NCBI RefSeq assembly: GCF_963921235.1
Contig: NC_086109.1
Span: 11,532,001 to 11,596,000 of the forward strand
Origin: Mobula hypostoma
Taxonomy: Eukaryota
DNA length: 64,000 nucleotides
Reading direction: 5' to 3'
The notes beneath the pieces were generated by a model, which saw only the letters and a program-made list of their open reading frames with translations, searched no databases and was not told the origin of the DNA. The position numbers and the translations under genes are program-made. Position 1 is the stretch's first letter; every line of letters starts with the position of its first letter. Shown one piece after another: positions 29,701 through 58,208 of the stretch.

Positions 29701-30482
29701 CCATGCCACCTTGTCTTGCCTACAGGTCTCATCAAGCCTGTGGTTGCTGAACACCCCTGAGCTTGTTCAAGGACGAGGAGGGATGAAGACCAACGTGGCC
29801 GCCAGCGGCTTGCCCCTGCACCAGTCCAACACAGCCCCACAGAATGCTGTCATGGTTGAGGGCTTGTGGGAAACAGCTGCACTAAAACAAAGAAACACAC
29901 AAAGAAACGTATTTGCAATGTTTTCTAGGTGTTCTTTGGAGCTTGAGTTAATGATTATTAGTGAGCAACTGCTGAATATGTCACAGTTTCTGAGGCACGT
30001 TGTGTTCTGGCTCTTCCAGGAGCATCTTGAACCCGAAGATTCATGTACGTGTTTTCCACGTCGTCTCTGCGATGCTTCACACTGGCATACACCACTGGCA
30101 TTTCCTATATGGTAAAGTGAGAAATATAGTTAGTGGTGGACTGATGACAAGTGGGTGACCTCAGAAAACAGCAGAAGACAACATCAGTGAGAAGAATGCG
30201 AGAGTAAGTAAACCAACACAGAGTATGTAAACAAACCCTAAGAGCTTTTCTAAGGTCTATAAAGAGAAAAAAAAATCTATGTAAGCATAGAAAGTGAGCC
30301 TGGGGAAATGTTTTGGGGAACAAAGAAACGCCATCCAGGACATGACTTCTTGTTACTACAGTCAGGGAGGAGACACAGGATCCTGAAGACCCATACTCAA
30401 AGATTCAGGAACAGTTCCTTCCCCTCTGCCTTCTAATTCTTGGGTGGTACATAAACCCATGAACACTACCTTGTTACTAATA

Positions 30483-31540: not shown

Positions 31541-31579
31541 ATAAAGATCTTTTATCTTTACGTTGACATGGAGAGAGAA

Positions 31580-32770: not shown

Positions 32771-33739
32771 TGAGAGGGAAGCATAAAAGACTGTAGATGC
32801 TGGAATCTAAAAGGGAAAGGAAAACAAACTGCTTGAGGAACTCAGCAGGCCAAGCAATCAAAACTCTGCATCTGGGTGAGAGTTTTGAAAGAAGACCGTC
32901 AGTATAAAGAAGTGAGAGGGAGCATAGAGGCAGGAGATGGTAGGTAATAGGTGGAACCAGATGACGTAGGGTTAATGGGCAGGTAGGGTGGAGGAGAGGG
33001 GAGTTCGGAGACAAGAGACCTGTGGGCAATCGGGAAGAACAGATAAGGACAAGTAAAGAGTTAGGCGGGGTTGAGGGGAGGGAGAAGGTGAAGTCAGACG
33101 TTGGAATTTAATAAGGAAAGGATGATGGGTAGATGGAACCAGATGGGGAAAGGGATAGGAAGGGTAAGGCCAAGGGAGAAGAAACCCAGGTGGATAAATA
33201 TGTGAATATATGATGGACAGAGGGAAAAGGGAAATGTGAACAAAGGAAGAGGGAAGGTGGATTGGTAGGAGTAGGAAGGGAACATGAAGTGTGAGTAAGC
33301 TGAAACTGACAAACCCAGTGTTCATACCATTGGGTTGTAGTCTCCCCAGAGACTATGCGATGTTCTTTTTGAGTTTGGCAGTGGAGAAGGTTAAGAATGG
33401 ACAGCTTATGACTAATGTATTATGTTACAGTCTTGTCGTGTGACCTATGTGTCGTGTGAATCTCTTGGAATATCTTCAAGCAGAGTTGGCTACTCTCCCC
33501 TGTTTCTTACATGAAGTGGCATCAACTTACTAGATTTTCTGCACCGTTAATCCTCTGTCCATTTGTACCTGGAAAATGTAACAATAATTTCCTTGAGTTC
33601 AGATTTGCGAAGGTTACTGTTAGGTTTATTCATTGATGTCATATTTGATGCTGTGCCCTTGCCCACAGGAACTGCGGGGCACACATCAGCAAATCACGGC
33701 AACCAGCCTCCTCTCTATGGTCTTTGTCTATACCTCAAA

Positions 33740-35983: not shown

Positions 35984-36125
35984 TCAATAAACTGCACTTG
36001 GAGTTACAAAATGAAATAACATTGTGTAAATGTCTGAATCTATTGAGAAACAGGATGGCTTCTTCTGCTTTTCAACTACTTCATTTAACTCCTGGTTTGA
36101 TGCTTTCATCACTTGGTTTGTACCG
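35984..36125 (-). CDS. CD300/pIgR-like receptor, candidate terminal cytoplasmic exon (CGTNQVMKASNQELNEVVEKQKKPSCFSIDSDIYTMLFHFVTPSAVY*)
   Basis: Acceptor tgtttttctttgaaag, open phase-2 frame to TGA at 35984-35986. An alternative acceptor ctgtttctcaatag at 36040 gives the same C-terminus directly from the TM exon. Confidence 0.5.
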
Positions 36126-36224
36126 CTTTCAAAGAAAAACATTCTTGTTCATTCTAGGTATAACCAAAATACTTCCATCATCTTTTAGAGCTTTCAACCG
36201 TCCGACACAGGTATCGATTTTGTA

Positions 36225-36512
36225 GAGACATGCAGCATGAAACAGGTTATTGGAATTTCAATGTTGTGTCGACATTTTAACCTACTTCCAAGACCATTCC
36301 AAGAGCTACCTGCCAGCCTAGTCGTCATATGGGAGCCCAAACACGGGAGGATGAACCCTGGGCGTCCTCCCAAGACCATGGTCAACACACCCCTAGAAGA
36401 CAGCGGCGCGGCTAATGTAGATGAACCGAACACACTGATGAGGGAGAGGGGGAAGTGGAGAGTCCTTCATCGTGCCCTAGGCCTGAGTTGACGTAGTAGT
36501 AGTAGCAGTAGC
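36225..36512 (+). mobile_element. RTE-clade LINE 3' end with (GTA)n tail
   Basis: ELPASLVVIWEPKHGRMNPGRPPKTMVNT...RGKWR is a typical RTE C-terminus. Confidence 0.75.
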
Positions 36513-36814
36513 AAGACCATTCTAACCCTTCCCTTTTCCCCTTGCCCATAGGCCTCCATTTTTTTTTCATCCACGTGTCTATCTAAGAGTTTCTTAAATG
36601 GCCCAAGTGTATTTGTCTCTACCACCATTGCCGGGAGTGCATTCCACTCTGTATATTAAAAAACACCTCGGATATGCCCCCCAATACTTTCCTCCAATCA
36701 CCTTAAATGTATGCCTTCTCATATTAGTCATTGTCATCCTGGGTAATAAGCTCTGGATGTCCACTCTAGCAATGCCTCATCATCTTGTACACCTCTATCA
36801 AGGTGTTGTCTAAC

Positions 36815-36866
36815 CAGTGCTTTGCAGATGTATAAACTGGTTGCTTTTGTAGACTAGGTGAATGGT
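36815..36866 (-). CDS. CD300/pIgR-like receptor, candidate cytoplasmic exon 5 (DHSPSLQKQPVYTSAKH)
   Basis: Acceptor cctttcacaaattcag 83 nt after the TM donor, donor CTG|gttaga; 52 nt, phase 1-2. It bridges in frame to the exon at 36125. Confidence 0.5.
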
Positions 36867-36949
36867 CTGAATTTGTGAAAGGCACATCAGAGAGGAGAGC
36901 AATTTTTAAACCATCATTTGACATCATCTTGATACTTAACTAAACTTAC

Positions 36950-37065
36950 CAGTCTTCATCTTCTGCCTGAGCTTTGCACAAATAATCATGGCAGTAATGA
37001 GCAGCAGGAAAAGAACTGACAAGGCAATTGCAAGTATAATATGCCATTGGGATAAAGGTGTTGGC
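36950..37065 (-). CDS. CD300/pIgR-like receptor, exon 4: transmembrane segment
   Basis: Acceptor ttttgcag, donor CTG|gtaagt; 116 nt, phase 2 in (AG+G=Arg) and 1 out. Encodes RPTPLSQWHIILAIALSVLFLLLITAMIICAKLRQKMKT: a hydrophobic helix followed by a basic stop-transfer cluster. Confidence 0.88.
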
Positions 37066-37229
37066 CTGCAAAATTCAACAAAGACATTAACAGACCTAGA
37101 CTAATGGGCACACTGAAAATTTCTGGTTCTCCAGTATTACGCTATGTTTTTGATCTGGTAAATACCAATATGATGTACATTTGAACACAGTTAAATTCCG
37201 GAATTTTACTAATTATCCTAAACACGTGA

Positions 37230-38060
37230 GCCTCTCACTCAATGTCAGCATGACCAAGGAGATGATTATTGACTTCAGTAGAATGAAGCTAGTGGCCCGT
37301 GAGACATCCTTCATCAGGGGTGGAGAGGGTCAGTAACTTTAAAATTCTTGGTTACAATTTCAGAGAATCTGTCCTGGAGCCAGCACATAAGTGCCATTAT
37401 AAAGAAAGCATGGCAGCGCCTCTGTTTTCTTAGACGTTTGTGAAGAATTGACATGCCATCTAAAACTTTGACCAACTTCTATGGATGTGTTGTGGAGAGT
37501 ATACTGACTGGCTACATCACAGCCTGGTATGGGAAGACCAATGCCCTTGAATAGAAAAGCCTATAAAAAGTAGTGGATACAGCTCAATCCATCTTGGGTA
37601 AAGCCCGCCCCACCATTGAGCACATCTACATGGATCACGGGTATAGGAAAACAGCATCTATCATCAAGGGCCCCCACTATTCAGGCCATGCTCTCTTCTC
37701 ACTGCTGCCATCCAGAAGAAGGTAGAGGAGTCTCAAGACCCACGACACAAGGTTCAGGAACAGTTATTACCCCTCAACCATCAGGTTCTCGAACCAGAGG
37801 TGATAACTTCACTCGCCCCATCATTGGACAGTTTCCACACCTATGGACTCACTTCCTTCATCTCATGATCTTGATATTTATTGTTTGTTTATTTATGATA
37901 ATTATTATTATTTTTCTTTTTGTATATGTACAGTTTTTTGTCCTTTACACATTGGTTGCTTTTCCATCCTGTTGGGTATGGTCTTTCAACAATTCTGTTG
38001 TGCTTCTGGTACATACTGTGATTGCCCGTAAGAAGATTAAACTCAGGGTTGTACTTGGTG
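37230..38060 (+). mobile_element. Rex1/Babar-type LINE 3' part
   Basis: KTKEMIIDF-like sequence, antisense-free CVVESILTGYITAWYG, PSRRR...TTRFRNSYYP remnants. Confidence 0.75.
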
Positions 38061-39274
38061 AACTTGTGAACTTTGAGATTCTGGAGATCCAAAGCAACAC
38101 ACACAAACTGCTGGAGGAGCTCAGTAGATCAATCAGCAACCATGGAGAGGAATAGACTGTTGTTGTTTCGTTAGGAGTGGAAAGGAAGGGGGAAGAAGCC
38201 AGAATAAGAAGGTGGGGGGGGGGGAGGGAGGTGAAGGAGAACAAGTATGGCAGGTGACAAGTGAGAGCAAGTGATGGGGTAGGTTGGTCACCTTTTACCT
38301 CTTCCACCTGTTGCCTCCTGACTTTTTACTTCATCGCCCTCTCCCTACCCACATCTGATCTTGTATATCACATTTTCTCCTTCCCCTTCCTCCCACCTTC
38401 TTATTCTGGCTTCTTTCCCCTTCCTTTCCAATCCTGATGATGGTTCTTGGTCCATAAAGGCAACTGTATATCCCCCATCCCCCATAGATTCTGCCTGGCC
38501 TACTGAGTTCCTTCAGCATTTTGTATATGTTGCAAATAATCCTGTTTGTACTTGAGGAAACACTAAGGAATTATACATTTCAACTCCAAATTTGTTCCTG
38601 TTGTAATCCTTTGTCAACTATGTAAGTCTATTAATGGAAAACGATCGCTTCTGTTAAGAATTTGTTATAAATAGAGTCAAGTAATCCTGGATTCACACAA
38701 TTAGACCTCAGAAAATGCTCATCACTGATCAATAGTTCATCACTAACTGTATTACTAAGTCTAGGAACCCTCCAACCTGATGGCATGAACATCGATTTCT
38801 CCAACTTCATGTTGGAGACTTACGTGACACGAAATTTGTTGTTTTGTGGCAGCAGTACAGTGAAAAGACATTAAATTACAAAAATTAATGAATAGCAAAA
38901 TAAAAAGGAATAACGTGACAGCAGCGAACCTAAATTCTGGTAATTTTTGCCCTCCCGCTCACTTCTTCTTCATTTCCCCAATCAAGCTTCCTACCTCTTC
39001 TCCTCATCTGCCTATCACCTCACGCTGGGTGCCTTTCTCCTTCCCTTTCTCCCATGATTCATTCTCCTCTCTTGTAAAATTCCTTCTTCTCCAGCCGTTT
39101 GTTTTTTCTACATATCACCTCCTAGCTTCTTACTTCACCCCCACCCTCCTCCCACTCATCCGGCTTTACCTATCATGTTCCAGCTTGTCCTCCTTCCTCT
39201 CCCCCCACCTTCTTATTCTGGCATCTTCCCCCTTCTTTTCCACTCCTGATGAAGAATCTTGGCCCAAAATATCT

Positions 39275-42200
39275 ATTAGAAATATAGAAAACCTGCAGCA
39301 CAATACAGGCCTTTCAGCCATCAATGCTGTGCCGAACATGTACTTACTATAGAAATTACTAGGGTTACCCATAGCCCTCTATTTTACTAAGCTCCATGTG
39401 CCTTTCCAGGAGTCTCTTAAAAGACCCTATCGTATCCAACTCCACCACCATTGCTGGCAGCCCATTCCACGCACTCACCACTCTCTGCGTAAAAAACTTA
39501 CCCCTGACATCCCCTCTGTACCTACCTCCAAGCACCTTAAAACTGTGCCCTCTCATGATTGCCATTTCTGCCCTGGGAAAAAGCCTCTGATGATCCACGT
39601 GATCAATGCCTCTCATCATCTTATACACCTCTATGAGATCACCTCTCATCCTCCGCCGCTCCAAGGAGAAAAGGCCGAGTTCACTCAACCTATTCTCATA
39701 AGTCATGCGCCCTAATCCAGGCAACATCTTTGTAAATCTCCTCTGCACCCTTTCTATAGTTTCCACATCTTTTCTGTAGTGAGGTGACCAGAACTGAGCA
39801 CAGTACTCAAAGTGGGGTCTGACCAGGGTCCTATATAGCTGTAACATTACCTCTCGGCTCTTGAATTGAATTCCATGGTTGATAAAGGTCAATGAACCGT
39901 ATGCCTTCTTAACCACAGAGTCAACCTGCGCATCAGCTTTGAGTGTCCTATGGACTCGAATCCCAAGAGCCCTCTGATCCTCCACATAGCTAAGTGTCTT
40001 TCCATTAATACTATATTCTGCCATCATATTTGACCTACCAAAATGAACCACCTCATGCTTATCTGGGTTGAACTCCATCTGCCACTTCTCAGCCCAATTT
40101 TGCATCCTATTAATGTCCTGCTGTAACCTCTGGCAGCCCTCCACACTATCCACAACACCCCCAACCTTTGTGTTATCAGAAAATTTACTAACCCATCCCT
40201 CCACTTCTTCACCCAGGTCATTTATAAAAATCATGAAGAGAAGGGGTCCCAGAACAGATCCCTGAGGCACACCACAGGTCACCGACCTCCATGTAGATAT
40301 GACCCATCTACAACCACTCTTTGCCGTCTATGAGCAAGCCAATTCTGGATCCACAAAGCAAGGTCTCCTTGGATCCCATGCTTCCTTACTTTCTCAATAA
40401 GTCTTACATGTGGTACCTTATCAAATGCCTTGCTGAAATCGATATACACTACATCTACTGCTCTACCTTCATCAATGTGCTTAGTCACATTCTCAAGAAA
40501 TTTAATCAGGCTCGTTAGGCATGACCTGCTTTTGACAAAGCCATGCTGGCTATTCCTAATCATATTATGCCTCTCCAAATGTTCATAAATTTTGCCTCTC
40601 AAGTCTTTTCCATCAGCTTACCAACCACTGAAATAAGACTCACTGGTCTATAATTTCTTGGGCTATCTCTACTCCCTTTCTAGAATATCTGCAACCCTCC
40701 AATCCTCCGGAACCTCTCCCATCCCCATTGATGATGCAAAGATCCTTGCCAGAGGCTCAGCAATCTCCTCCCCCACCTCCCACAGTAGCCTGGGATACAT
40801 TTCATCTGGTCCCGGAGACTTATCCAGCTTGATGCTTTCCAAAAGCTCCAGCACATCCTCTTTCTTAATGTCTATCTGCTCAAGCTTTTCAATCTGCTGT
40901 AAATCATCCTATAATCAACAAGATCCTGAAGCAAAGTATTCATTAAGTACCTCTGCTACCCCCTCCGGTTCCACACACATTTCCACTGTCACACTTGATT
41001 GGTCCTATTCTCTCATGTCTTATCCTCTTGTTCTTCACATACTTGTAGAATGCCTTGGGGTTTTCCTTAATCCTGCTCACCAAGGCCTTCGCATGGCTCC
41101 GTTTGGCTCTCCTAATTTCATTCTTAAGCTCTTTCTTGCTTGCCTTCTAGATCTCTAACATTACCTAGTTTTTTGAACCTTTCATATGATTTTCTTTTTC
41201 TCTTGACTAGATTTTCAACAGCCTTTGATCCTGTACCGACCATCCTTTCCCTGTCTCATTGGAACGTACCTATGCAGAATTTCATGCAAATATGCCCTGA
41301 ACATTTGCCACATTTCTGCTGTCCATTTCCCTGAGAACATCTGTTCCCAATTTTTGCTTCCAAGTTCCTGCCTGATAACTTTGTATCTCCCCTTACTCCA
41401 GTTAAATGCTTTCCTAACTTGTCTGTTCCTATCTTCCCCCAATGCTGTGGTAAAGGAGATAGAATTGTGATCACTATCTCCAAAATGCTTTCTCACTGAG
41501 AGATCTGACACCTGACCAGGTCCATTTCCCAATACCTGATCAAGTACAGCCTCACCTCTTGTAGGCTTATCTACATATTGTGTCAAGAAACCTTTCTGAA
41601 CACACCTAACAAACTCCACCCCAACTAAACCCCTTGCTCTTGGGAGATGCCAATCAACATTTGGGAAATTAAAATCTCTCACCATGACAAACCTGTTATT
41701 ATTAAACCTTTCCAGAATCTGCCTCCCTATCTGCTCCTTGATGTCCCTGTTGTTCTTGGGTGGTCTATAAAAAACACCCAGCAGTGTTATTGACCTCTTC
41801 CGGTTTCCAACTTCCACCCATAGAGACTCAGTAGACAATACCTCCATGAATTCCAACTTTTCTGCAGCCATGACACTATCTCTGATCAGCAGTGCCACGT
41901 CCCCACCTCTTTTGCCTCCCTCCCTGTCCTTTCTGAGATATCAGAGGTAAGTTTTTTATGCAGAGAGAGGTGAGTGCGTGGAATGGGTTGCCAGTGGCGG
42001 TGGTGGAGGCAGAAATGATAGGGTCTTTTTAGAGACTCATGGATGGACACATGGAGCTTTGAAAAATAGAGGGCTATGGGTAAGCCTAGGTAGTTCTAAG
42101 GTAAGGTCATGTTTGGCACAGCTTTGTGGGCCGAAGGGCCTGTATTGTGCTGTAGGTTTTCTATGTTTCTATGTTTCTATCGAAGTCCTGGCACTCTAAG

Positions 42201-43200
42201 GCACCCTTCCTGCCCCTGAGCCAAGTCTCTGTAATGGTTACAACATAATAGCTCCAAGTATTGATCCATGCTCTAAGCTCAACCACTTTGTTCATGATGC
42301 TTCTTGCATTAAAATAGACACATCTCAAACCGTCAGTCTGAGCGTATCCCTTCTCTATCATCTGCCTATCCGCCCTCTCGCACTGTCTCCAAGCTTCCTC
42401 TCGCACTCTCTCCAAGCTTCCTCTAACCAACAGCCCCTTCCTCCATCTCTTCAGTTTGGTTCCCAACTCCCAGCAATTCTAGTTTAAACTCTCCCCAATA
42501 ACCTTAGCAAACCTCCCTGCCAGGATATTTGTTCCCCCTCGGATTCAGGTGCAACCCTTCCTTTTTGTACAGGTCACGCCCTCCCCAATGATGCAGAAAT
42601 CTGAATCCCTGCCTCCTGCTCCAGTCCCTCAGCCACGCATTTATCCTGCACCTCATTCTATTCCTATACTCACTGTCACGTGACACAGGCAGTAAACCCG
42701 AGATGACTACCTTTGAGATCCTGCTTCTCAACTCCTTCCTAACTCCCTGTAGACTGTTTTCAGGACCTCCTCCCTTTTTCTACCTTTGTCGTTGGTGCCA
42801 GTATGTAACACGACCTCTGGCTGTTCACCTTCCCACTTCAGGATATCGTGGACGCAATCAGAAACATCCCGGACTCTGGCTCTAGAGGAAAACTACCATC
42901 CGTGTTTCTTTCCTGCATCTACAGCATTGCCTGTCTGACCATCTAACTATAGTCACCTATTACTGCTGCCTTCTTCCTTTCTCTACCCTTCTGAGCCACA
43001 GGGCCAGACTCTGTGCCAGATGCGCGGCCACTGTTGCTTCCCCCAGGTAGGCCGTCCGCCCAACAGTACTCAAACAGGAATATTTATTGTTAAGGGGGAC
43101 AGCCATAGGGGTGCTCTCTAGTATCTGACTCTTGCCTTTCCCTCTCCTAACTGTTACCCACTTACCTGTCTATTAAGTCTCTGCAGGTTCTTTATTCATT
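39275..43200 (-). mobile_element. Near full-length CR1 LINE in intron 3, sense to the receptor gene, with a nested plus-strand CR1 tail (about 41940-42180)
   Basis: ORFs 39365-40282 ([10 protein letters not shown]...ERVQRRFTK), 40279-40602, 41215-41898 (endonuclease), and ORF1 esterase remnants at 42480-42960. Confidence 0.92.
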
Positions 43201-43449
43201 TCTATAGATTCTTGGTGATATCTTCTCCATTCCTTTCCTGTCCTGATGAAAGGTCTTGGCCCAAGATGTTGACTGTTAATTCATTTCCATAGATGCTGCC
43301 TGATCTGCTGAGTTCCTCCAGCATTTCGTGTGAGTTTCACTATATTACTGTACTGATAAAGTTGCATTTTCCTCTGATATTTACTGTGAGTTGTTCTCTG
43401 AATACTGTAATGCTGAGGTAAAGCCGAATTGTCCCATGAAATGACTAAC

Positions 43450-43576
43450 CTGATCTGATGTGAGGAAACTGAAGACTCAGTGGATTCTGCTTTCCTGGTG
43501 GACATCTCATTCTGAGGTGAAGTGGTCCACATGGTTTCAGTGGAAATTTCCAAGGTGGTTGCCTTCTTTTCTGGAG
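43450..43576 (-). CDS. CD300/pIgR-like receptor, exon 3: Ser/Thr-rich stalk
   Basis: Acceptor ccactttag, donor CAG|gttagt; 127 nt, phase 1 in and 2 out. Encodes APEKKATTLEISTETMWTTSPQNEMSTRKAESTESSVSSHQI. Unique sequence between repeats. Confidence 0.85.
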
Positions 43577-43929
43577 CTAAAGTGGATCAAATATCTGATC
43601 ATTGAATGTCTTATAGCAATTTCTATCTCCATGATGTGTCTATAGTGCCCCAGCTAGGAGGTCTCCTGCAATGTGCGGGTTGATTCTTGGTTCAAACCTG
43701 ATACCAGCGGTTTGAGCAAGAATTTCCAGTCTGGTGATCCAATGCAGTCCCCTCCTGCAGAAGTCATCTTCAGATGGCCAAGCGCCATAAGCGAAGCATT
43801 AAGGATCAAGGATACATTTTATTTACTATTTACATTTACACGTATTTGGAATTTACTGTGGTGTTTGTTGATGCAACATGCAACAAAAAACAATTAGAAA
43901 GAATAAAGAATTATCTATTTCTTTATTCT

Positions 43930-45065
43930 TTCAAGGATAGAGGTTAGAGGTAAGAGGAAATCTTGCCTGATAAATCTGTTGGAATTCTTTGAGGAAATAA
44001 CAAGCAAGATACACAAAGGAGGGTCACTAGATGTTTTTTACTTGGATTTTCAGAAGATCTTTGACAAGGTGGCACATATGAGGCTGCTTATCAAAATAAG
44101 TGCCTGTGGAATTACTGGAAAGATACTAGCATGAATAGAATATTGGCTGACTGGCAGAAGGCAAAGAATGGGAATAGAGGGGACTTCTCTGGTTAGCTGC
44201 CGATGACTAGTGATGTTCCACAGGGTTTGGTGTTAGGACTATTTTCCATGTTATGTCAATGAATTGGATGATGAAATTGATCGCATTGGGGCCAAGGTTA
44301 CAGATGATATAAAGATAAGTGCAAAGACAGATGGTGTTGAGGTAGCAGGGAGTCTGCAGAAGGTCTTAGACAAATAAAAGGATGGACTATTTTCTATACA
44401 GGGAGAAAATTCAAAATTCAGAGGTACAAAGGAGTCCTTTTGCAGGATTTCTTAAAGGTTAACTTGCAGGTTGAGTCAGTATAAAGTCAGGAAGGTAAAT
44501 ATTATGTCAGCATTCATATCGAGAGGACTAGAATATAAAAGCAAGGATGTATTGTGAGCAGTTTTGCTTCTCTTATCTAAGAAAAGATGTGCTTGCATTG
44601 GAGCGGGTCACAAGAATTATTTTAGGAAAGAAAGGGTTAATGTTTAATTAGCATTTGATCGCTCTGAGCCTATACTCACTGACATTTAGAAGAATGGAAG
44701 GACGTTGGGGGATCTCATAAACCAACTGACTATTGAAAGGACAAGATAGATTATGAAATGTGGAGAGGTTGCTTTCTTTCACGTGAGTGCCTCGGACCAG
44801 TGGGCATAGCCTAGGAATAGAGGTATGTCCATTTAGGAGGAATTCCTTCAGCCAGAAAATAGTGAAACTGTGGAATCCATTGCCACAGACAGCTGTGGAG
44901 GCCACGTCATGGGGTATATTTAAAGTGAAGTTTTCCAGAGTCTTGATTAGTCTGGATGCCAAAGGTTACAGGGAGACGTCAGGAGAATGGGTTTGAGAAA
45001 GGTAATAATGGATTGGTGGAGCACAAATGACCTAATTCTGCTCCTATGTCTTATGTTCTTTGGAA
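43930..45065 (+). mobile_element. Degenerate CR1 LINE RT/3' fragment
   Basis: LDFQKIFDKV remnant and CR1 3'UTR. Confidence 0.8.
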
Positions 45066-45739
45066 TAAAATTTACATAAATTCATAAATACCAGCATATA
45101 TTTACAATGTAAACATCATTATAAAAAGCAACTTACATTGCAATGCATTAACTGAGGTAATAAGCAAAAGGAATCCTTCTCACTGTTACACACATTATTA
45201 AACTTCTTTCACAACTTTCAAAATACTCCAAGTTGTGTTGTCTGTGTGTTGTTAGGGAGAAGTATATTCCTTCTGAGCTGAAGCAGAAGTTGGGGTTGGG
45301 GAATGGGGAAGATCCCATGGTTAGCATTGGTACTAAGGACATAGGCAGGAATAGGATGGAGTTTCTGATGAAGGATTATGAGAAGCTCGGGGGAAATTGA
45401 ATGTTTACAGGGTGACCAGGACTGAGTACTCATTCATCCAGATTACATAATGTTCCAGAACAAATGGACAAATCATAAATGAGGTGGCAGAAGTGTTATT
45501 AATCAAGGAAGGTATCAGTGGGTTTTGAGTTGTTAGGGTTCAGTCTGTGGGTAGTAATGTTGAATCAGAATAGGTTAAAATCACTAAGTACAAAGCTAAG
45601 ATAGGAGTTGTCTACACGCACCCCCACCCCACAAAATGTGATCCTACATTACTTCGGAGCATAAATGTGGAAATCACTAAGGCATGTTTGAAGGGGACTG
45701 CAATTGTCACAGGAAAGTTTAGTGGGAATTGGAATGGTA

Positions 45740-46450
45740 TGATTATTGTCACATGTACTGAGATTCACTGGAAAGCTTTTGTTTGAACTCCCTCCAGACA
45801 AATCATTCTCTACATCAGTATGTCAAGGCAGTAAAAAGAAAACAAAATGCGGAATGTAATATGCAGTTACAGAAAAATGCAAGGGCCACAATGAAGTAGA
45901 ATGGAAAATCTAGGGTTCAACTTTGAGTGTATCAAAGGTCTGCTCAGGATCTGTTCACAGTGGTACAGAAGGTATCCTCGAGCCTGGTGGTACATACTGT
46001 CAAGCATTTGTACCTTCTGATAGACAGCAGGAGGGAGAAGAGCAAACTACTGGGGTGAAAGGTGTCCTTAATTTTTGATGGATGCTTTCCTGAGCCATAG
46101 ACAAGAGACAGAAGTACAGAGAGAGACCAAAGAAGGGAGACTGGTTTAGCTCTTGTGGTCTTTGGCAGAGCAGTTGCCATAAAAATAGTGATTCATCCAG
46201 ATAGGATGCTTTCTGTGGTGTATCTACAAAAATTGATGAGGGTCATTGGAGGTGCCAAATTCCCTTAAGCTTCTGATGAAGTAGAGGGTCAGTGTGCTTT
46301 CTTATTGTAGCATCTATATGGAGGGGCCAGAACAAATTCTCAGTGATACCTACAGCTGTGACTGAAGTTCTCACCCATCTCCAACTCTGCATTAATGATA
46401 CAGATACAATCATGTACTGCATCCTACTGGTCATATCAATGACCAGCTCC
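45740..46450 (-). mobile_element. Rex1/Babar-type LINE 3' fragment
   Basis: Antisense LAINMKELVID and RRYKCLTVCTTRLEDTF. Confidence 0.6.
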
Positions 46451-46669
46451 TTCATATTGATTGCAAGCACCAAACTGGCGAGGGTATCAAAGAGAAAAAA
46501 ATTGTTGAGTACATGAGAAATTAATTTCAGAGCAACATGTTATGAAGCCTACCCAGGAATTTGCTCATGTGAGCAGGTTTTTGCTGGGAAATATACTCAG
46601 TGGCCACTTTAGTAGATACTCTGCGTGTTATTATGTTAGATAATAAAAAACTTCAGTTTCCAGTGGGCA

Positions 46670-47965
46670 ATGCGAGGAGTTCACCACAGTGCCATATCTG
46701 AAGAGGGTGTGATGGCTGACCCAAGAAAGACGTTGGACGCTGAAAACATGGAGAGGCCCATAAACAGAGAGGAGATGAGACATTTCTTGGGGATGGTGAT
46801 TTATCTGGCTACATTCACCCTTGACTCTCAGATGTGTCAAACCCCTTATGTCACTGCTTGAACATCAAAAGTTATCTCATGAGCAAGAAGATTGTTTTCA
46901 AATGCTGAAAAGAGTCATAACTGAAGAGACAGGCTGACGTTTTATGATCTGGAAAGGGGTACTAGGACCTCAGCTGATGCGTCCCGAAATGGCTTTGAAA
47001 CAGTACTACTGCAGCAGCATGATGACATATGTCAACCTGTGACCTGTGTGTCAAGGGTTTCAGCAAACGTGGAAGACAACTACGTACAAATAGAGAAAAC
47101 ATTTCTCACCAGCAAATATGCATGCAAAAAGTCCCATCAGTATACCTATGGACAAGGTTTTGAAGTGGAGACAGACCATAAACCATTGGTCTCTTTTCTG
47201 TCCAAACCACTGAATGACTGTCCCATGAGGATACAGCACATGTTGAGAAGGCTGCCGAAATATGATGTGAAGATGATCTACACTGTGGGAAAATAAAAGT
47301 TTGCTGCTGATGCGTTGTCTTGTGCAATTTATGAGAAAGAACAGATTGATGAAGAAGTTAATTCAGATATACAGGTCTTTGTTGACATGATTATCACCTC
47401 CCTTCCAATATCTCCAAGAAGAACAGAGCAGATTAGGAAAGCAGCAGTGTCAGATGAAACAATGAAAGAACTCAAGGATACGATATGGAAAGCATTGACA
47501 GCAGCAAAGAATTACTGTCCACTGAGTATTCAGGATTCTCGGGCATCCAGAGCTGAACTGTTAGTAGTGAAAGGTGTGGTCTTCAGATGGAGCAGTTTTG
47601 TGATTCCAGTGTTGCTATGCAAGGAAATGCTCCAGAGGATGTACAAAGGGCATCTTGGTGAGGAAGATGTAAACGTAGAGCTTGTGAAGTGATATACTGG
47701 TCAAGAATAAACTGAGACATCAACCAGACCATCGCTTCATGTGAAATAGGCCTTACCTACAGACAAGAAATTAGCAAGCAGAACTGCTTACACCAACACC
47801 TGTACCAGACAGCTGGTACTTCAATATTGGAGTGGGTTTGTTTGATTGTAATGGGAAGAATCACATTGTTGTAACAAACTACTTTTCCAATTACCCAGAT
47901 AATGCAACACTGCAATCGACATCCAGCAAAGCAGTCAGCACCTTCCTGAAGGCTATGTTCTCACA
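46670..47965 (+). mobile_element. Gypsy pol fragment (RT C-terminus, RNase H, integrase)
   Basis: RHFLGMVIYLA; ADASRNG; YVQIEK; FEVETDHKPLV; RIQHMLRRLPKYD; GKNHIVVTNYFSNYP. Confidence 0.85.
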
Positions 47966-48346
47966 TTTTATTGATTATGAACATACATCAGTAGCCTCTT
48001 TATTAGGTAAAGGCAATGCATAATAAAATGGGCACTGAGTGTAATTTCTGGAATCTTTCTAAATAGTGATCTGAAAAAGTTCCTTTTATTTTGGGGAATT
48101 TATTTCTGGTGAAAGTCCATGATCAACCTTTTTGTTATCATCAGTTTTGAGGAAAGTAGTGATTTCTGTGGAAACTCTCCAGATGAGCTTTTGTGTTCTT
48201 GGACAAAAAATGTTCCTGAGAGTGTCCCAGTTCCCTGAAAATCCCCTCAGCAGCTGGGACTACATTTCCCCCTCCATCCATACTGGGACATCTCCCACAC
48301 CGAAGCTGGGCTCTTGCTGTTGGTCACAAGCGCAGATCCCACTGGG

Positions 48347-48474
48347 TCAAAATTTCTGTGCTGAACCAAGGTGACAGAGTGAAAGCAGAAGGTTCCTGAT
48401 CCCAGTCTGTCCACTGCTGGGACTACAGGGAAAAGGCCTGGCCTCGAACTCCCACTGCTGGGAAACTGGAGCAT
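48347..48474 (-). CDS. Candidate alternative terminal exon after the IgV exon (soluble isoform): DAPVSQQWEFEARPFPCSPSSGQTGIRNLLLSLCHLGSAQKF*
   Basis: Long pyrimidine tract ending cccactctcccatctcag, phase-1 compatible. Stop at 48347-48349. Two minus-strand AATAAA at 48099-48104 and 48085-48090. Confidence 0.4.
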
Positions 48475-49127
48475 CTGAGATGGGAGAGTGGGAATAGGGT
48501 TTGTGGGGATGGAGAGAGAAGGAAGAACACTGAGGAAGGGAGGAGTGATCAGTGTGGAGAGGGGGAGAAAGGGAGGGTAAAGGTGAAGGGTGGATATAAA
48601 ATGCTCTGGTAATTTCCCGCAGAGATGTGAAGATAATGTTCAAGATTTCATCTCTTTAATAATTGAGACAGAGATAATGTAATCTGTTAACTGTTCAGCA
48701 AAGGATTCCCACTTCTTATCATTTGTATTTTGTTCAGATTGTCAGAAATCCCAAGCATTCTTTTAGTGCAGTTGTAATGAGCAGTTTGTAGGAAGGATAG
48801 GGAGAAGGGCGGAGAGGCTGCAAAGGAGATTCACCGGGATGTTGCCTGATAGGCAACGATTAAATTATGTGGAAAGATTAGAGAGACTAGATTGTATTTT
48901 TTGGGGAGGTGAAGACTGAAGGGGGACTGACTGATATCTGCCAAACTATATGGGGAATAGATGGAATTGTTTGTGGTAAACTTCGGCTCATGGCGTATGT
49001 AACCTGGGACTGAAGTTTAAGGTAAGGAATAAAAGATTTAGAGGGCATATAAAGAATATTTTTACTTCATCCAGAGGTGAGGGAGGAAATTCTCAGGCTG
49101 GGAGAGTGAAGAAAAATATTAACGTAC

Positions 49128-49451
49128 CTTCAGAAATCTCCAGTGAAATGGTAAACCTTTCGTTCGGTATCAACATTGCCCTTTCTATCATACACTGGTA
49201 TAGCCCTTCATCACTCATCTTTAGATTGTCCATGGTTACTGAAAGTATCCCTTGTGTTTTGTAATCAGTCATTGTTATTCGTTCACTTTGTGGCTGCTCA
49301 GTCGAAACCACAGCGGAACAACTAGTGTAAGTTTCACCTCTACACCATTTCTTCACGTAGTCCTTGTATTTCTGATCATACCGACATTCCACAGTGACTG
49401 ATTCTCCCACTACTCCTCTGACCTTCTTAGGTCCAGTTAATGCAGTTGAGC
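49128..49451 (-). CDS. CD300/pIgR-like (CMRF35-like) receptor, exon 2: IgV domain
   Basis: Acceptor ctcttcacag and donor GAAG|gtacgt; 324 nt, phase 1-1. Translation GSTALTGPKKVRGVVGESVTVECRYDQKYKDYVKKWCRGETYTSCSAVV...GILSVTMDNLKMSDEGLYQCMIER...LEISE. It has the B- and F-strand Cys, the C-strand Trp, DxGxYxC, and the extra WC...C pair typical of CD300/pIgR/TREM V domains. Confidence 0.93.
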
Positions 49452-49769
49452 CTGTGAAGAGATTAATAATGAAAGGTCACTCACACGTCACCAGAACAAA
49501 GTGCAGTAAGCAATATAAACTCATCATTTCAGTTGTTCAGAAAATTCCATGATTTTGCAGAGATCATGTTCCATTTTAATAGTTTATCCCTGATGTTAAT
49601 CCTTATTTCACTGAGATTGTTCTTGAAGTTACAGTGAAAGTGGAATCGCTCAGTTAGGCATTTCCAACTTGTGCATCTGCTGTTTCTTCTGTTGGTCCGT
49701 TGGTTCAATCTGTGCAGATTGGAAGTAGCATCTCCAACTTGCTGACAATCAACACTGGCTCTCCTCAGG

Positions 49770-50790
49770 GATGTGGGTTTAGCCAACTTCTCTTCTTGGG
49801 GTGCCCTACAAGGCTGTGTACTCAGCCCCCTGCTGTACTCACTGTACACTGATGATTGTGTAGCCAAGTTTTCATCGAACTCAATATATAAGTTTGCTGA
49901 TGACACCACAATTGTAGGCCGTATCTCGGGTAATGATGAGTTTGAGTACAGAAAGGAATTTAAGAACCTGGTAGCATGGTGTGAAGACAATAACCTATCC
50001 CTCAACGTCAGCAAGATGAAGGAATTGGTTGTTGACTTCAGAAGGAGTAGCGGACGGCACGACTCCATTTACATCGGTGGTGTGCAAGTGGAACAGGTCA
50101 AAAGCTTCAAGTTCCTCGGGGTCAATATCACAAATAAACCTGACTTGGTCCAAGCAAGCAGAGTCCACTGCCAAGAAGGCCCACCAGCGCCTTTACTTCC
50201 TGAGAAAGCTAAAGAAATTTGGCCTGTCCCCTAAATCCCTCACTAATTTTTATAGATACACCGTAGAAAGCATTCTTCTAGGGTGCATCACATCTGGTAT
50301 GGAAGTTGTCCTGTCCAAGACCGGAAGAAGCTACAGAAGATCGTGAACACAGCCCAGCACATCACACAAACCAATCTTCTGTCCTTGGACTCACTTTACA
50401 CCGCACGCTGTCGGATCAGTGCTGCCAGGATAATCAAGGACACGACCCACCCAGCCAACACACTTTTCGTCCCTCTTCCCTCCGGGAGAAGGCTCAGGAG
50501 CTTGAAGACTCGTACGGCCAGATTTGGGAACAACTTCTTTCCAACTGTGATAAGACTGCTGAATGGATCCTGACCCGGATCTGGGTCGTACCCTCCAAAT
50601 ATCTGGACCTGCCTCTCGGTTTTTTTGCACTAACTTACTTTCCCTTTCCTATTTTCTATTTATGATTTATAATTAAAATTTTTAATATTTACTATCGATT
50701 TGTACTCCAGGGAGCGGGAAGCACAGAATCAAATATCGCTGTGATGAATGTACGCTCTAGAATAAGAATCAGAATCAGAATCAGAATCCT
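49770..50790 (+). mobile_element. Rex1/Babar LINE RT and 3' end with (AGAATC)n tail
   Basis: QGCVLSPLLYSLYTDDC...KFADDTTIVG...LNVSKMKELVVDFRR; AHQRLYFLRKLKKF. Confidence 0.9.
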
Positions 50791-53165
50791 TTATTATTGC
50801 CATGTATGTGGACACATACAGGGAACTTGATGCTGGTTTCCCTGAGCTCTTGCAGTACAGAATCAAAAAGCAAACAAAACAATAGTGCAAGTGATCGTGA
50901 ACTATATACAAATGAGGTATACCTGTGTATGTACAGGTGGACTAAAATTCAAGCGTTCATAAGACAGATGGCATACGGAAAGAAACTGTTCTTGTACCTA
51001 TTAGTCCTGGCATACAGTGGTCTAAAGCGCCTACCAGAAGGAAGGAGTTGGAACAGGTGATGTCCAGGGTGTGATGGGTCTACAATGATGCTGCTTGCTC
51101 ACTTCCTGACTCCAGATGCATATAAGTCCTGGATCGAGGGCAGCTTTACACCAATAATCCTTTCCGCAGCCCTGACGGTTCTTTGGAGTCTATTCTTGTC
51201 TTGTTTGGTAGCTGATCTGAACCAGACAGTGATGGACGAACAGAGAACAGATTGGATTGTTGCTGAATAGAATTGAATCAGCAGCTCCTGAGGCAGATTG
51301 TACTTCCTGAGTTGACGTAGGAAATCAATTGTTTGGTGACAATAAAATATAAAGCCGGCGGGAGGAGAAGATGGCAGCGCGCTGTGCGTGCGCAGCTCTC
51401 CGGTGAAAATGATGTCGTATCTGTTAAATAGGGGCCGTGGACAATTCTGATATGATGGAGAATGGACATGAAAGCACAGAGGAACACCTGGAGAAATTTC
51501 TGAAACGCCCGTTCGCTGCTGTCGTTACTGTGTGGTCGTGAAATTTTCAGAGGGTTGGCCTCAAAATCCCTGGCCTTGCTTGCTTTTGGCGACCGAGAAG
51601 GAGGTCGAATCGTTCGGACAGAGATGGCGCTCAGTACTCAGTGTCACAGAGCTGATCAGAGCTCAAAGCTTTCAGCCGACTCAGAGTTGGCTTTGGGTCG
51701 GCATGGCAGGGAGAGTTTTTCTTCCTTCTACCGTCTGCGTGAGATATGGGACTTTCGAGAAACTTTGAACTTTTTTACTGTGCGCACGGACTTCTTCATC
51801 AAGTTATGGTATTGTTTCACTGTTTGTAACTATATGTTATAATTATGTGATTTTGTCAGTTTTTTTCAGTCTTGGTTTGTCCTGTGTTTTGTGACATCAC
51901 ACCGGAGGAAATAATGTATCATCTCTTAATGCATGCATTACTAAATGGCAATAAAAGAGGACTACGTATCTTCATAATCATAAAGTATAAAGTATAAAGT
52001 ACTCCCGAGACAACCATGATTAGGCACAGCTCGTCAAGTCAAGTCAAGTCACTTTTTATTGTCATTTCAACCATAACTGCTGGTACAGAACATAGTAAAA
52101 ATGAGACAACGTTTTCCAGGACCATGGTGCTACATGAAACAACACAAAAACTACACTGAACTACGTAAGAAAAAAAACACAAAAACTACACTAGACTACA
52201 GACCTATCCAGGACTGCATGAAGTGCACAAAACAGAGCAGACATTACAATAAATAATAAAGAAGACAGTAGGCACAGTAGAGAGTATAGTAGGTTGGTGT
52301 CAAGCCAGGCTCTGGGTGTTGATGGCTTCGGGGAAGAAACTGTTAGGTAGTCTGGTCATGAGAGCCTGAATGCTTCAGTGCCTTTTGCCAGATGGCAGGA
52401 GGGAGAAGAGTTTATATGAGGGGTGTGTGGGGTCCTTCATAATGCTGTTTGCTTTGCAGATGCAGCGTGTGTTGTAAATGTCTGTAATATCTCAAATGTC
52501 ATCCAGAAATTTGCTGATGGCACAGCCATTGTTGGCAGAATGTCAGATGAGTGGTGTCACAGGAACAACCTTGCCCTCAGTGCATGCAAGACCAAAGAGC
52601 TTATTATTTAAATTCAAAAAGGTAAGATGAGGGAACACATGTTAATCCTCAGGGAAGGATCAGAAGCAGAGAGAGTGAGCAACTTCAAATTCCTGGGTGT
52701 TCATATGTATGAGCACCTAACCTGGTTCCGTTATATTGACGCAGCTATGAAAAAGGCTATATTTCATTCGCAGTTTGAGGAGATTTGGTATGTTACCTAC
52801 AGTCCTCAGACATTTCTATAGATGTACCATGAAAAGCAATCTGACTGGCTGCATCATCATCTAGTATCAGAAACAACTTCTGCCCATCTGCTCTCCAATT
52901 TCTGAATGGACATTGAGCTCATGAACACTACATCACGTCTTCTTTTTCTATTTTTGCAGTATTTATGCAATAAAACAATTTTTATCTATTATACAGTTTT
53001 CAGCTCTCTGCAGTTCACTTCGATCCTGTGCAGTCCCATACCAGATGGTGATACAAACAACTGTAATTCAGTTTTTTCCTATATTATTTGTTCTGCAGCT
53101 GGTGCAAAGTTATCAAATTTCACAAAATATGTTGGTGATATTAAACCTGATTCTGATTCTGATCC
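50790..53165. mobile_element. Cluster of Rex1/Babar fragments in both orientations
   Basis: Antisense tails at 50790 and 52030 ((aagtc)n); KFADGTAIVG and CKTKELII at 52500-52620; (tctgat)n tail near 53150. Confidence 0.65.
51355..51980 (+). mobile_element. CpG-rich non-coding retroposon (non-autonomous, no tRNA head)
   Basis: Starts gggaggagaagatggcagcg; ends AATAAA...cataatcataaagtataaag; short ataaag duplication at the flanks. Confidence 0.55.
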
Positions 53166-54094
53166 TTGTTGAGGGCAGGTTGTGATTTCTGGGAAAATGA
53201 TCCCTGCTGTGGTTCAGTGAAAGAGTCATCACATTCTTAGGGGCAACCAGAGGTAGAGAATAAATTCTGGCCTTGTCAATGATGCCCAGATCTCAATGAA
53301 GTTATTGGGGGATCATCCAGTGTGGCTTTTTGGGTGAAACTCAGAGGAAGAACTGGGTGAATACTCTATTTCGATTACACTAGAGGCCATTTAATAATAA
53401 ACCTAAATTAGAGGAACAAATTCTTCAAGGTGGTTGCAGAAAGTTGCATGAATATTAGGTTTGTCATAGTAAATGATTTAACTTTCTAAATAAAGAGTGA
53501 ATCTGCTTCAGTGCTAAAGAAATTGATGGGATTGTATTTATTAATTGTTTTCAGAAATGTTCCCTTAAGCAATATGTAGAAGGTTCTGCTACAGAGAGGG
53601 AAAAGCCCAGTCTATTCTTGGGAAATGGGCTGGACAAATTGGAGCATTGCAAATTTTGATGATATTAGATAGAAACTTGCTGAAGTTGATTGGAGTAGTT
53701 TGTTTGCAGGCAATGGGGGCGACAGACAAGTGGGAATTTTGTAAAAGTGAGATAATCCATATTCCCTTTGGAGTATTGTCATGGCTGGCAGGAATAAAGA
53801 ATTCTTAACCATGAGAGCCCTGGTCAGGAGGAAAGAAGGATACATGGAACAACTGGGATCTGGCAGTAAAGGAGATGCAGGTGTATGCTTAGGAAGGAAA
53901 TCAAGAGCGCAAGGAGGTGGCATTAGATAGCTTTGGCTCAGACACACTTACTCACACAGCCAGCTGATCTCCATCGGGAGAACTTCTGAATATACAGAAT
54001 GGGGGGCTGGTGGACCCTGGTGATTACTGTACATGCACTGAAACTCCTGCCCATATGGCTAATAGCCTAGGGTGCAAGGAGAGAGCAAAAAAAG

Positions 54095-56560
54095 TTCAAA
54101 TGCAAAGTAAATTTGTTATCAACGTCCATTCAGTGAGTTTATTCAGTAAATCTATAATAGAATAATAACCATAACAGAATCAATGAGAGACCTCTTGGGT
54201 GTTCAACCTGTGTGCAAAAGTTAACAAAATGTGCAAATGCAAAAAGAAGGAATAGTAAGCTATAATTATCGAAAAGATGCGATGAAGTGTCCTTGGAAGT
54301 GAGTCGATAGGTTGTGGGAGCGTTTCAATGATGGGGAAAGTGAAGTTAATCCCCTGGTTCAGGAGCCCGATGGTTGAGGGGTAATAAAAGTCCCTGAACC
54401 TGGTGGTGGTATTGGATCCTGTTGCTCCTGTACCTTCTTCCTGATAACGACAGTGAGAAGAGAGCATGTCCTGGATGGTAAAGATCCCTGATAACGGATG
54501 CTACGTTCCTGTGACAACGTTTCATGTAGATGTGCCCAGTCGATCATGGGTAAAGCCCTCACCACCACTGTTCACAATTTGCAATGGTGGGGACTGGCCC
54601 ATGGACCTCTGGTTTCCTCCTCCTGAAGTCAATAATCAGCTCTTTGAACTTGCGGACATGCTACAAGGTTGTTGTTATGCCACCACTCAGCCAGATATTC
54701 AATCTCCCTCTATATGCTGATTCATCACCACCTTTGATTCAGCCAACGACAGGAGTGTCATCAGCAAACTTGAATATGGCATTGGAGCCATGCTTAGGCA
54801 CACAGGCATAAGTGTAAAGCGAATCGAGCCGTGGACAAAGACCACACCAAACTGGGTGTTTAACCAGTGTGCAGAAGGACAACAAACTGTGTAAATAGAA
54901 AGAGAAAGAAATAACAATAATAAATTTAAGTCTCTTTTAAGAGTCTCCTGGATAGGTACATGGAGCTTAGAAAAATAGAGGGCTATGGGTAACCCTAAGT
55001 AATTTGTAAGGTAAGGACATGTTTGGCACAGCTTTGTGGGCCGAAGGGCCTGTATTGTGCTGAGGGTTTTCTACGTTTCTATGTCTATAAATAAATAAAC
55101 AATAACTGTCAAGAACGTGAGAGGAAGAGTCCTTGACAGTGAGGCCAATGGTTATGGGAACTCGCCATGACAACATTCGGTCATGCCCTCTTTTCACTGC
55201 TACTATGAAGAATGATTTTGAAACCTGATATCTCACCTCATCAAGTTCCAGAGCAGCAGCTTTCCTGTGACTACCAGGGTCTTGAACCATCTTGCATGGG
55301 CTTATCTCTACCTCAGCAGCAGAACACAGTGGACCATCCATTGCACTACCATGGACTGGACTCTAATTGTGCTTATCTTTGCTCTAATGTCTTGTTTTAC
55401 ACAGTTTCTTTGTTTTGTGTTTGTCTAAATCTATATGGCCGTGTTGCTGTTGCAAACAGATTTTACCCTGTGACTGTACATCACAGTGCTTGTGTATGTG
55501 ACCATAAATTTGACTTATCACCAAGAGCTAGGTAATCTTCCTCATGGCACCAAATCAAAATCTTCCATGCAATTGCACCACCCACTCAAAGACCTTCCAC
55601 CTTCCAACCAGTGCTATCAGAACCTCTGTCGATTGAGGATTATCTCAGATCATCCGCACCCTAACTCTTCTCCACTGGGGTGAACATCGTAACCTCCCCC
55701 TCCTTTGTCGTACTAAAGCCCACGCCTGTTTCCCTGGATGCCAGCTTGTCATTCAGTCTGATTCTGTGCGTTAATCAAAGATCAGCTTTATTCTCCATAT
55801 CGATTTATATGTATTGGGAATTTGCAGTGGTGTGTTGGTGAGATAGAAAAGAAAACATCGCCATTCAAAATTGTAATAATAATACATTATATAAAAATAA
55901 ATTAAAATACAGATACGGAATAAAACATGCATAAATATCAGCATATACTTGCAATGTAAACAACATTAAAAAATGTTTTAAAGTGCTTACAGTTATTACA
56001 GAGACAGGGATGAGTGGGGGTGCAATCCAGAATAGTTACCTGGGGGAAGAAACTTTTAAAATGGTGTAAAGTGTTTGTTTTAATAGGCTTATCGCGCTTC
56101 TCAGAAGGGAGCTTTAGGAAAAAGTAGTTTGCCAGGTGGGTAGAGACTGCAATTAATTTTCCTGCCCATTTCTTTGTCCGAGACACGTACAAGTCCTGCA
56201 GTAATGGTGGGCTGCAGCCAAGGATATTTTCATCTTAAGTGAAATACTGATGAGCAGGTACTTGAATGATGAAGCAGTGCCCACTGTAGAGTTGTTGATG
56301 ATAAGAGTGTGGAGAGGAGACCCATTACTCCTGAAGTCGATATACAGCTCCCTGGTTTTGAGGGCACTCAGCTCCAAGTTGTTGCGATTGTATCGACTCT
56401 GGTGATTAGTCAGTGATTGAGCAAGCTTTATCAGTGTAATTGATGGATCACGGAAGACGCAGCCATTGGTGCATGGAGAAAGTAGCAGAGGGGATGGAAC
56501 ACACCCCTGTGGTGCAGCAGTGTGGAGTGAGCATGATGTGGAGATGTGCCTGCCTCGTCT
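54095..56560. mobile_element. Rex1/Babar fragments (mostly antisense) and a CR1 tail (54935-55085, plus)
   Basis: APQGCVPSPLLLS (ORF 56153-56563 minus) and SSLLMTLLSLAESKV-type RT remnants. Confidence 0.6.
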
Positions 56561-57978
56561 CATAAACTGCCTTCTGTCAGTATGTCACACGTCCCCATTG
56601 AATTAAACTGTATGGCTGCTCATGAAAGCTGCTGTTTCAACCCCGAGCCCCAGTGGAAAATCCACGCCTTCATATGACAGGACTGTTACTCCCTCTGGTT
56701 AGAAGTAGGAAACAAAAGGATTCAGTCCGATACTGAGACCTAGGCTGTGTGGGAGGAAAACCAGGAAACAGTGTCCCAGAAGCTTGGAGCAGATTCCAAA
56801 CCTCAAGCTCAGTCTATTACAGTAAAAGTAGCCACTCACATGAAATAAACTGTCTGCCTTGATACTGGCAGCTCGGGAACATCTTCACACTGCACTTCAT
56901 CCAGTCTCTGAAACATAACATCATTCAATTCTCTTTCCAGTCACTGGTAACGTGGGCAGTGGACAGCACACTCCCCATTGTGTAGTGTAAGGAGCCAGTG
57001 TGGAGATGTGTGATCAGATCAATCACCAGTTACCATCGAGGAATTCAGTGACCTGATCTTCAGAGACTGGGTAAAGCCCACTGTGCAGACGTGCTCAAGC
57101 TACCAGGGCCTGCTGTGTTGCAATTTATTGTAAGTGAGCAGATGATTTTTAACAGAAGGGAGACATTGGCACAAATTCTGCAAATGTGAAACTAAGAAGA
57201 GCTTGTAGTGCTTCCTGATTTCAGAAGAACATCTGTTTCCAAAGGTTGGGTTGCACACATTTTTATTAGAGTGTCCTATAATTTAACGTTTTCCCATGCA
57301 GTGTGTAGAGAGTGTCATAGAGACATAGAGTCATTGAACACTACAGTATGGAAACAAGCCCTTCAGCCCATCTAGTTTATGCTGAACTATTAATCTGCCT
57401 AGACCCATCAACATTCACCCACACTGTAGTCCTCAATGCTCGTCCCATCTATGTACTTATCCAAATTTCTCTTGAATATTGAAATGGAACCTGCATCCAC
57501 CACTTACGCTAGCGGTCCGCTGTGGCTTTCGCAGGCTGACTGTACCCCACCCAGTGCCAGTGGTGTGTTCCGGGTAAAGCTCAATGGGTGATGTTCTGGC
57601 CGTTTCCTCTCGCACTCCAGGAGCCTGAGCACTGACGGAGTGTACATCTGAGGGAGCTTGGCACTGTTAGAGGACCCTCCTTGTTCAGGATGAGAATTAT
57701 CCCCACCACCAAGGGCAAAAAGCAGGGCAGAGGGCAGTTATCTCTTTGCTATTCAGGAGAACTTGCTGTGTACACATTGGCTACACACAACACCACACAG
57801 ACACTGATGGAGGTTACTGCAGGATCCTGCAGATTGAGTGATTTACCATTAGCTGAACCACCGAGCGAGGGAACAACATCAGAATTTCCTGTTATTCATC
57901 AGTTGGTTTGACAAAAACACTTTAGGCCACTTGTTAATAGTTCAACTGATGAGATTATTTTATAAAATAATGATTTAC

Positions 57979-58075
57979 CTGATATGAAACCAACAGAGAT
58001 GAGAAACAAGAAAGCGATAGATTCCACAATCCTGGGCCATTTCTGGTGAGTGACTTCACCCTGCAGCAACTCCAT
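57979..58075 (-). CDS. CD300/pIgR-like receptor, exon 1 (leader): MELLQGEVTHQKWPRIVESIAFLFLISVGFIS-G
   Basis: ATG in good Kozak context (aaatATGg). Hydrophobic core IAFLFLISVGFIS. Donor CAG|gtaaat in phase 1, matching the phase-1 IgV exon. 97 nt. Confidence 0.65.
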
Positions 58076-58208
58076 ATTTCAGCAGTGTCAATCTGATCAG
58101 CTCCCTGTACTGTGTCTTGACTTGGTCTCTTCCTTATTCCGATATCTCAAAGAAACTAGTTCCTGTTTTGAAATAAAACAAATCAGCTGTAGTGTACGAA
58201 CTGCTTGG

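Follow-up and report, generated by a model that had tools for sequence, protein, structure and literature searches.

A six-exon CD300-like receptor gene with a putative inhibitory tail in the devil ray Mobula hypostoma

The question raised by this locus of the devil ray Mobula hypostoma is which receptor it encodes, two different proteins having been read from it. The DNA analysed, hereafter the window, is a stretch of 64,000 nucleotides (nt) of contig NC_086109.1 (positions 11,532,001 to 11,596,000 of the forward strand), and all coordinates below count from its first letter. An earlier note, made by inspection of the letters, chained six islands on the minus strand (58075-57979, 49451-49128, 43576-43450, 37065-36950, 36866-36815 and 36125-35984) into a complete receptor of 285 amino acids (aa), while the public annotation (P0004, 'polymeric immunoglobulin receptor-like [Mobula hypostoma]', GCA_963921235.1) gives a 565-aa protein spanning 69.9 kb. 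Both proteins are wrong, and their correction is the main value of this work. In our judgement the evidence is very probably best explained, proposed mechanism included, by an intact and transcribed gene of six exons on the minus strand that encodes an inhibitory CD300-like receptor.

Exon structure and transcription

An exhaustive HMMER search returned 2,139 relatives, the closest full-length ones of which were run by tblastn against the window. The corrected gene extends from 58075 to 29958 on the minus strand (approximately 28 kb), with exons summing to 849 nt, or 282 aa; every splice site is canonical, the phases are compatible and the frame is open through all six exons. The coding part of exon 1 (57979..58075) provides the start codon (ATG at 58075-58073) and the leader or signal peptide (33 codons), ends in phase 1 at a donor in which GTAAAT follows a G, and shares 80% identity by tblastn with the N-termini of the Hemitrygon proteins P0002 and P0006. 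Exon 2 (49128..49451, phase 1 to phase 1) encodes the immunoglobulin V-type (IgV) domain, followed by a Ser/Thr-rich stalk in exon 3 (43450..43576, phase 1 to phase 2, bordered by AG and GTTAGT) that is 86% identical to P0002 and P0006 and 100% identical to the public model P0004. The membrane-proximal segment, the transmembrane helix and the start of the tail lie in exon 4 (36950..37065, phase 2 to phase 1), with 80% identity to P0006 from Hemitrygon akajei.

The remainder of the family's cytoplasmic tail was located by tblastn some 6 kb beyond the span of the earlier note. It begins with a micro-exon of 38 nt (exon 5, 33531..33568, minus strand, phase 1 to phase 0, with ag before it and gtaagt after it) encoding GTNGQRINGAENL, a peptide that shares 12 of 13 residues with P0006. 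The last coding exon (29958..30104, minus strand) encodes 48 aa, EMPVVYASVKHRRDDVENTYMNLRVQDAPGRARTQRASETVTYSAVAH, carries three Tyr motifs and terminates at a TAA stop (29960-29958); its acceptor at 30104 is also used by P0004, there in the wrong frame. Below the stop, AATAAA first occurs after about 950 nt, past a G-rich, loosely tandem repeat of GTTGGGGAG-type units (29100-29700, minus strand) that sits directly below the last coding exon, within or just past the 3' untranslated region, in a part of the window with strongly negative GC skew.

Transcription was assessed with four small RNA-like runs of one study (X1-X4, 86-241 million letters), whose nature as RNA was a guess and whose contigs were aligned only to 31150-37149, the stretch that discriminates between the two candidate tails. 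The joint from 36950 to 33568 is present in contigs of X2 (depth 12.6) and X3 (in a 641-nt contig), and the skipped ends read CT..AC on the plus strand, i.e. GT..AG on the gene strand, so the runs are likely RNA. Contigs of X2, X3 and X4 cover the exon 4 region (36947-37068) with zero differences and cease matching at its acceptor, although the aligned stretch continued to 37149, leaving unmatched extra letters in all three (369 and 150 in X3, 26 and 26 in X2, 158 and 9 in X4). Since at least 150 letters in X3 and at least 26 in X2 continue beyond the exon 4 acceptor, the transcript is spliced there. Words of the V exon also occur in the runs (46-93% in X1-X4, 75-93% in X1-X3), and of the words of 57979-58150, a segment that includes the leader exon, 59% are present in X2 and in X14, another small run of this study. 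Elsewhere in the aligned stretch, at 31150-32150 and 36150-36750, summed contig depth was several hundred up to 12,000, with contigs 95-99% alike and many odd joints, a combination that suggests transcribed repeat families and not the receptor gene.

The receptor protein and its relatives

The 282-aa product comprises, in order, a leader, an IgV domain with four Cys, a Ser/Thr stalk, an uncharged transmembrane segment and a 68-aa tail. Hydropathy identifies two hydrophobic segments (residues 16-38 and 190-214, the transmembrane peak reaching 3.06), and the signal peptide, stalk and single membrane passage together predict a type I topology. Cys55 and Cys119 would form the canonical disulfide, and Cys69 and Cys77 the extra pair after the WC motif to which the earlier note had drawn attention; in V-domain numbering, C22, C86 and W35-C36 show little or no variation in 37 relatives. 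The stalk exon and the transmembrane exon gave no Pfam hit.

The tail carries two inhibitory motifs of the immunoreceptor tyrosine-based type (ITIMs), VVYASV (Y240) and VTYSAV (Y277), flanking a YxN motif, YMNL (Y254). The earlier note missed this two-ITIM tail because its tail exons were wrong. The corrected tail is conserved, being 79% identical to that of P0006 and 63% identical to those of the Pristis proteins P0119 and P0158 (E down to 6e-33), and the motifs (V/I)xY(A/S/T)(S/T)(V/I), TYMNL and VxYSx(V/I) recur in stingray, sawfish, skates, electric ray and three sharks. A search of the tail exon against PDB sequences gave zero matches at E<=10.

The V exon (107 aa, 49449-49129) matches the Pfam V-set at 1.2e-15, and the best single-domain match in the PDB by phmmer is mouse CD300lf/CLM-1 (2.7e-19, 72 bits). 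Lower bit scores were obtained for human CD300f (51), CD300c (45), CD300a (41), NKp44 (38), TIM-1 (35), TREM2 (34), domain 1 (D1) of pIgR (33) and FCMR (24), with individual pIgR domains scoring 5-35 bits. An AF2 model of the IgV domain built on the 37 relatives reached a mean predicted local distance difference test score of 93.9. The nine best PDB folds recovered with Foldseek were all mouse CD300lf (template modelling scores of 0.86-0.91, 35-37% identity), with pIgR D1 next, and 18 of the 19 top Swiss-Prot folds were CD300 members, the other being TMIGD3, followed by pIgR (23-28% identity) and FCAMR. The domain is thus a single IgV of the CD300/pIgR subtype with two predicted disulfides, and lies nearer to CD300 than to pIgR, FCAMR, FCMR, TREM, NKp44 or TIM. 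The earlier note's assignment to the CD300/pIgR/TREM group, as a type I receptor of a cartilaginous fish with one IgV, therefore stands, as does its preference for CD300 over pIgR. No second V exon was found by tblastn in the 64-kb window, where the best extra match had E=1.7.

CD300a and CD300f are the CMRF35-like molecules 8 and 1, inhibitory members of the CD300 family. The mammalian proteins share with the ray receptor a single N-terminal IgV, a second disulfide after WC, a Ser/Thr stalk, an uncharged transmembrane segment, an ITIM-bearing tail and adjoining activating paralogs with similar V domains; they differ in that the V domains are only ~30-37% identical and that the ray protein has a 16-residue N-terminal extension ahead of the hydrophobic core. 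Among elasmobranch relatives in NCBI, all of them computer-predicted proteins, CMRF35-like molecule 7 isoform X4 of Pristis pectinata (P0119) aligns over residues 1-286 with residues 1-282 of the ray protein at 57% identity. P0006 has the stalk, transmembrane segment, micro-exon peptide and ITIM-YMNL-ITIM tail in common with it (75% identity over 263 aligned residues) but contains two V domains instead of one.

As described in PMC3031540, which cites Cannon et al. (2006), the MDIRs (modular domain immune-type receptors) are multigene families of activating and inhibitory CD300/pIgR-like receptors in clearnose skate and zebrafish, with V domains resembling CD300, TREM/TLT and pIgR. By that description they resemble the ray receptor as a cartilaginous-fish family with activating and inhibitory members, and judged from it alone membership of the ray receptor among the MDIRs is plausible; two homolog searches that we started from ray and skate relatives yielded no MDIR-named protein of Raja eglanteria. 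The earlier note had also taken the gene to bear on how CD300- and pIgR-type receptors arose. This was overstated, MDIRs having been described by 2006 and dozens of ray and shark relatives already being named 'CMRF35-like' or 'pIgR-like' in NCBI: cartilaginous fish were known to have this family, to which the gene contributes one more paired receptor.

Proposed signalling and the activating neighbour

The features of the inhibitory subtype seen here are the uncharged transmembrane segment and the conserved VVYASV and VTYSAV motifs, from which recruitment of phosphatases is predicted. Following mammalian CD300a and CD300f, the V domain would bind a ligand, whereupon Src-family kinases would phosphorylate Y240 and Y277, and phosphatases of the SHP-1/SHP-2 type would dock through their SH2 (Src homology 2) domains at the phosphotyrosine sites and damp leukocyte activation signals. 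There is mammalian precedent for the recruitment of SHP-1 and SHP-2 by ITIMs (PMC12153786).

The receptor would form the inhibitory half of a pair with an activating paralog next to it. Ahead of the exons of the present gene, P0004 contains a complete receptor that has an Arg in its transmembrane segment (ALTRWIVFG) and a short tail, and is by these sequence features of the activating type; activating CD300 members lack ITIMs and signal via adaptors such as DAP12 (PMC12153786). Its V domain is identical to that of the inhibitory receptor at 88 of 108 positions (81%), the two being identical over their first 41 residues and differing in the C'-C''-D and FG parts. By analogy with the mammalian system, the gene described here most likely supplies the inhibitory side of a pair, within a cluster in which activating and inhibitory CD300-like receptors are paired.

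More tentatively, and with the balance of probability on the other side, the combination of an ITIM-YxN-ITIM tail with a single V domain of CD300 type may represent the ancestral inhibitory CD300 design, predating the split between cartilaginous and bony vertebrates. If so, the design would have been kept motif for motif into mammalian CD300a/f, and rays would have retained its pairing with an activating neighbour, gene conversion homogenising the V domains over their first 41 residues while the ligand-facing C'-C''-D and FG parts diverge.

Alternative readings and surroundings

Several observations count against an intact inhibitory receptor gene of the structure given above. The RNA shows only the junction 36950/33568 and both borders of exon 4, and the junctions 57979/49451, 49128/43576, 43450/37065 and 33531/30104 are placed by homology, phase and sites shared with the public model. 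That the runs are RNA is only a guess, and rare isoforms are invisible to contigs, absence from which is weak evidence. Where the micro-exon meets the ITIM exon, relatives are longer by five residues, and in M. hypostoma an in-frame TAG directly precedes the last-exon acceptor, which has therefore shifted with respect to relatives. We found no experimental work on the signalling, the ligand or the expressing cells of any elasmobranch member.

Four other readings of the locus were weighed against this one, two of which concern the exons. The earlier note would have exon 4 splice to 36866-36815 and then to 36125-35984, yielding a 285-aa receptor with no ITIM in its tail. All six of its islands do have AG/GT borders and compatible phases, its arithmetic (858 nt, 285 aa) is right and its exons 1-4 hold, with homologs supporting all four and RNA-like contigs supporting exon 4 as well. 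Its last two exons fail, and the gene is not complete within 35984-58075, the true 3' coding exons being at 33568-33531 and 30104-29958. The proposed exon 5 (36815..36866, minus strand) is skipped by the exon 4 contigs, which jump to 33568, has no homolog support and abuts a fragment of a long interspersed nuclear element (LINE) at 36542-36802; for the proposed exon 6 (35984..36125, minus strand), the bin 35950-36149 has zero depth in all four runs and the peptide gave no Pfam hit. Against 163 family members, the 64-aa tail that they would encode gave a best match of E=1.1. Within 1 kb after exon 4 there are 4,737 open GT-AG combinations of an exon 5 and an exon 6, so that an open chain in that kilobase carries no weight by itself, and the candidate motifs 'QPVYTSAKH' and 'DIYTML' are not a decayed copy of the ITIM exon, since the DNA of the two islands aligns to the true tail exon no better than shuffled letters (scores of 15 and 16 versus shuffled means of 16.1 and 16.6). 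We regard this tail as very improbable indeed. If instead P0004 were right, the locus would be a single 70-kb gene for a protein with two V domains, running straight to 30104. It is NCBI's deposited model for the locus, multi-V members are common among relatives and five of its splice sites are shared with the corrected gene, but it would put a complete transmembrane segment with a short tail in mid-protein, followed by a repeat-like exon. It also skips the leader exon at 58075, which is conserved and present in the RNA-like runs, and lacks the micro-exon that the contigs include, as a result of which the last exon is read in the wrong frame: its last 112 residues are the ITIM exon out of frame and past its stop, with no homolog. 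P0004 is a chimera of the upstream activating gene, a repeat-like exon, exons 2-4 and a misframed last exon, and there is accordingly little chance that it describes one gene.

The two other readings accept a receptor gene here and differ on its nature. It might be a ray pIgR, or a direct forerunner, that moves polymeric immunoglobulin across epithelia, as the 'pIgR-like' names of relatives in NCBI suggest; full-length pIgR chains also have the lowest whole-chain E-values in the PDB, but they outrank CD300 in this way because several of their five domains add up, and each pIgR domain falls far below the 72 bits of CD300lf. Five domains are matched in the human and mouse chains 7jg2_E and 5d4k_A, and two stretches in the 219-residue teleost ectodomain 5f1s_A, versus one V domain here. 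The V subtype with an extra Cys pair is common to both and pIgR domains are detectable as homologs, but tandem V domains, the pIgR D1 motif in complementarity-determining region 1 (which the earlier note had already found missing from the ray V domain) and a long sorting tail are all absent, the tail bearing ITIMs instead, and by fold pIgR D1 ranks after the CD300 members at 23-28% identity. A pIgR identity is accordingly very hard to credit. The gene might also be a paralog that, within a birth-and-death cluster, is decaying or non-functional, transcribed but yielding no working receptor. Relics in the cluster, such as a dead leader exon at 59318-59229, are in keeping with this, as are introns swamped by transposons and the shift of the last-exon acceptor beside an in-frame TAG. 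Set against these, the frame is open from the first exon to the sixth, no Cys, ITIM or splice site has been lost, and the gene is transcribed and correctly spliced at the junction tested; we consider decay improbable, and retain the intact inhibitory receptor gene.

The exon that replaces the leader exon in P0004 is a repeat-like open reading frame (ORF) at 56186..56398 on the minus strand, to which residues 196-266 of P0004 match at 98.6%. Reverse-transcriptase-type fragments at 49989-50219 and 52558-52695 are weak matches to this segment of P0004, and the ORF gave no Pfam hit. A fusion of this kind is also seen in the Mobula birostris model (P0154), where a second leader sits in the middle of the protein and the end derives from a transposon, which counts against P0004 as a single gene. 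In both the manta and the devil-ray annotation, an activating gene and the inhibitory one beside it are merged into a single 'pIgR-like' protein. In elasmobranchs, wrongly called micro-exons and the fusion of neighbours make multi-domain 'pIgR-like' genes look more numerous than they are, probably also in counts drawn from these annotations, and such miscalls hide ITIM tails, which matters for counts of activating versus inhibitory members and for the search for a shark pIgR.

The introns contain transposon debris, as the earlier note had described. Matched fragments comprise LINE endonuclease and reverse transcriptase at 39365-42466 (minus strand) and at 49773-50234 (plus strand), and an RNase H of long terminal repeat type at 47039-47296. 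The window is without flanking single-copy genes. The dead leader exon (59229-59318, minus strand) lies 1.2 kb upstream of the real exon 1 and resembles the N-terminus of the family; it reads VAQGEYTHR, stop, RQRTTGTIPV, stop, VLTSVDISS, with no ATG and a spoiled donor (cag followed by ataagt), and is probably the relic of a paralog lost from a birth-and-death cluster. Further away, at 13884-15834 on the plus strand, is an esterase-bearing non-LTR element, a LINE in which an ORF of the GDSL-lipase/OSK-type esterase kind (2.5e-12) is followed by an Exo_endo_phos endonuclease ORF (5.5e-11).

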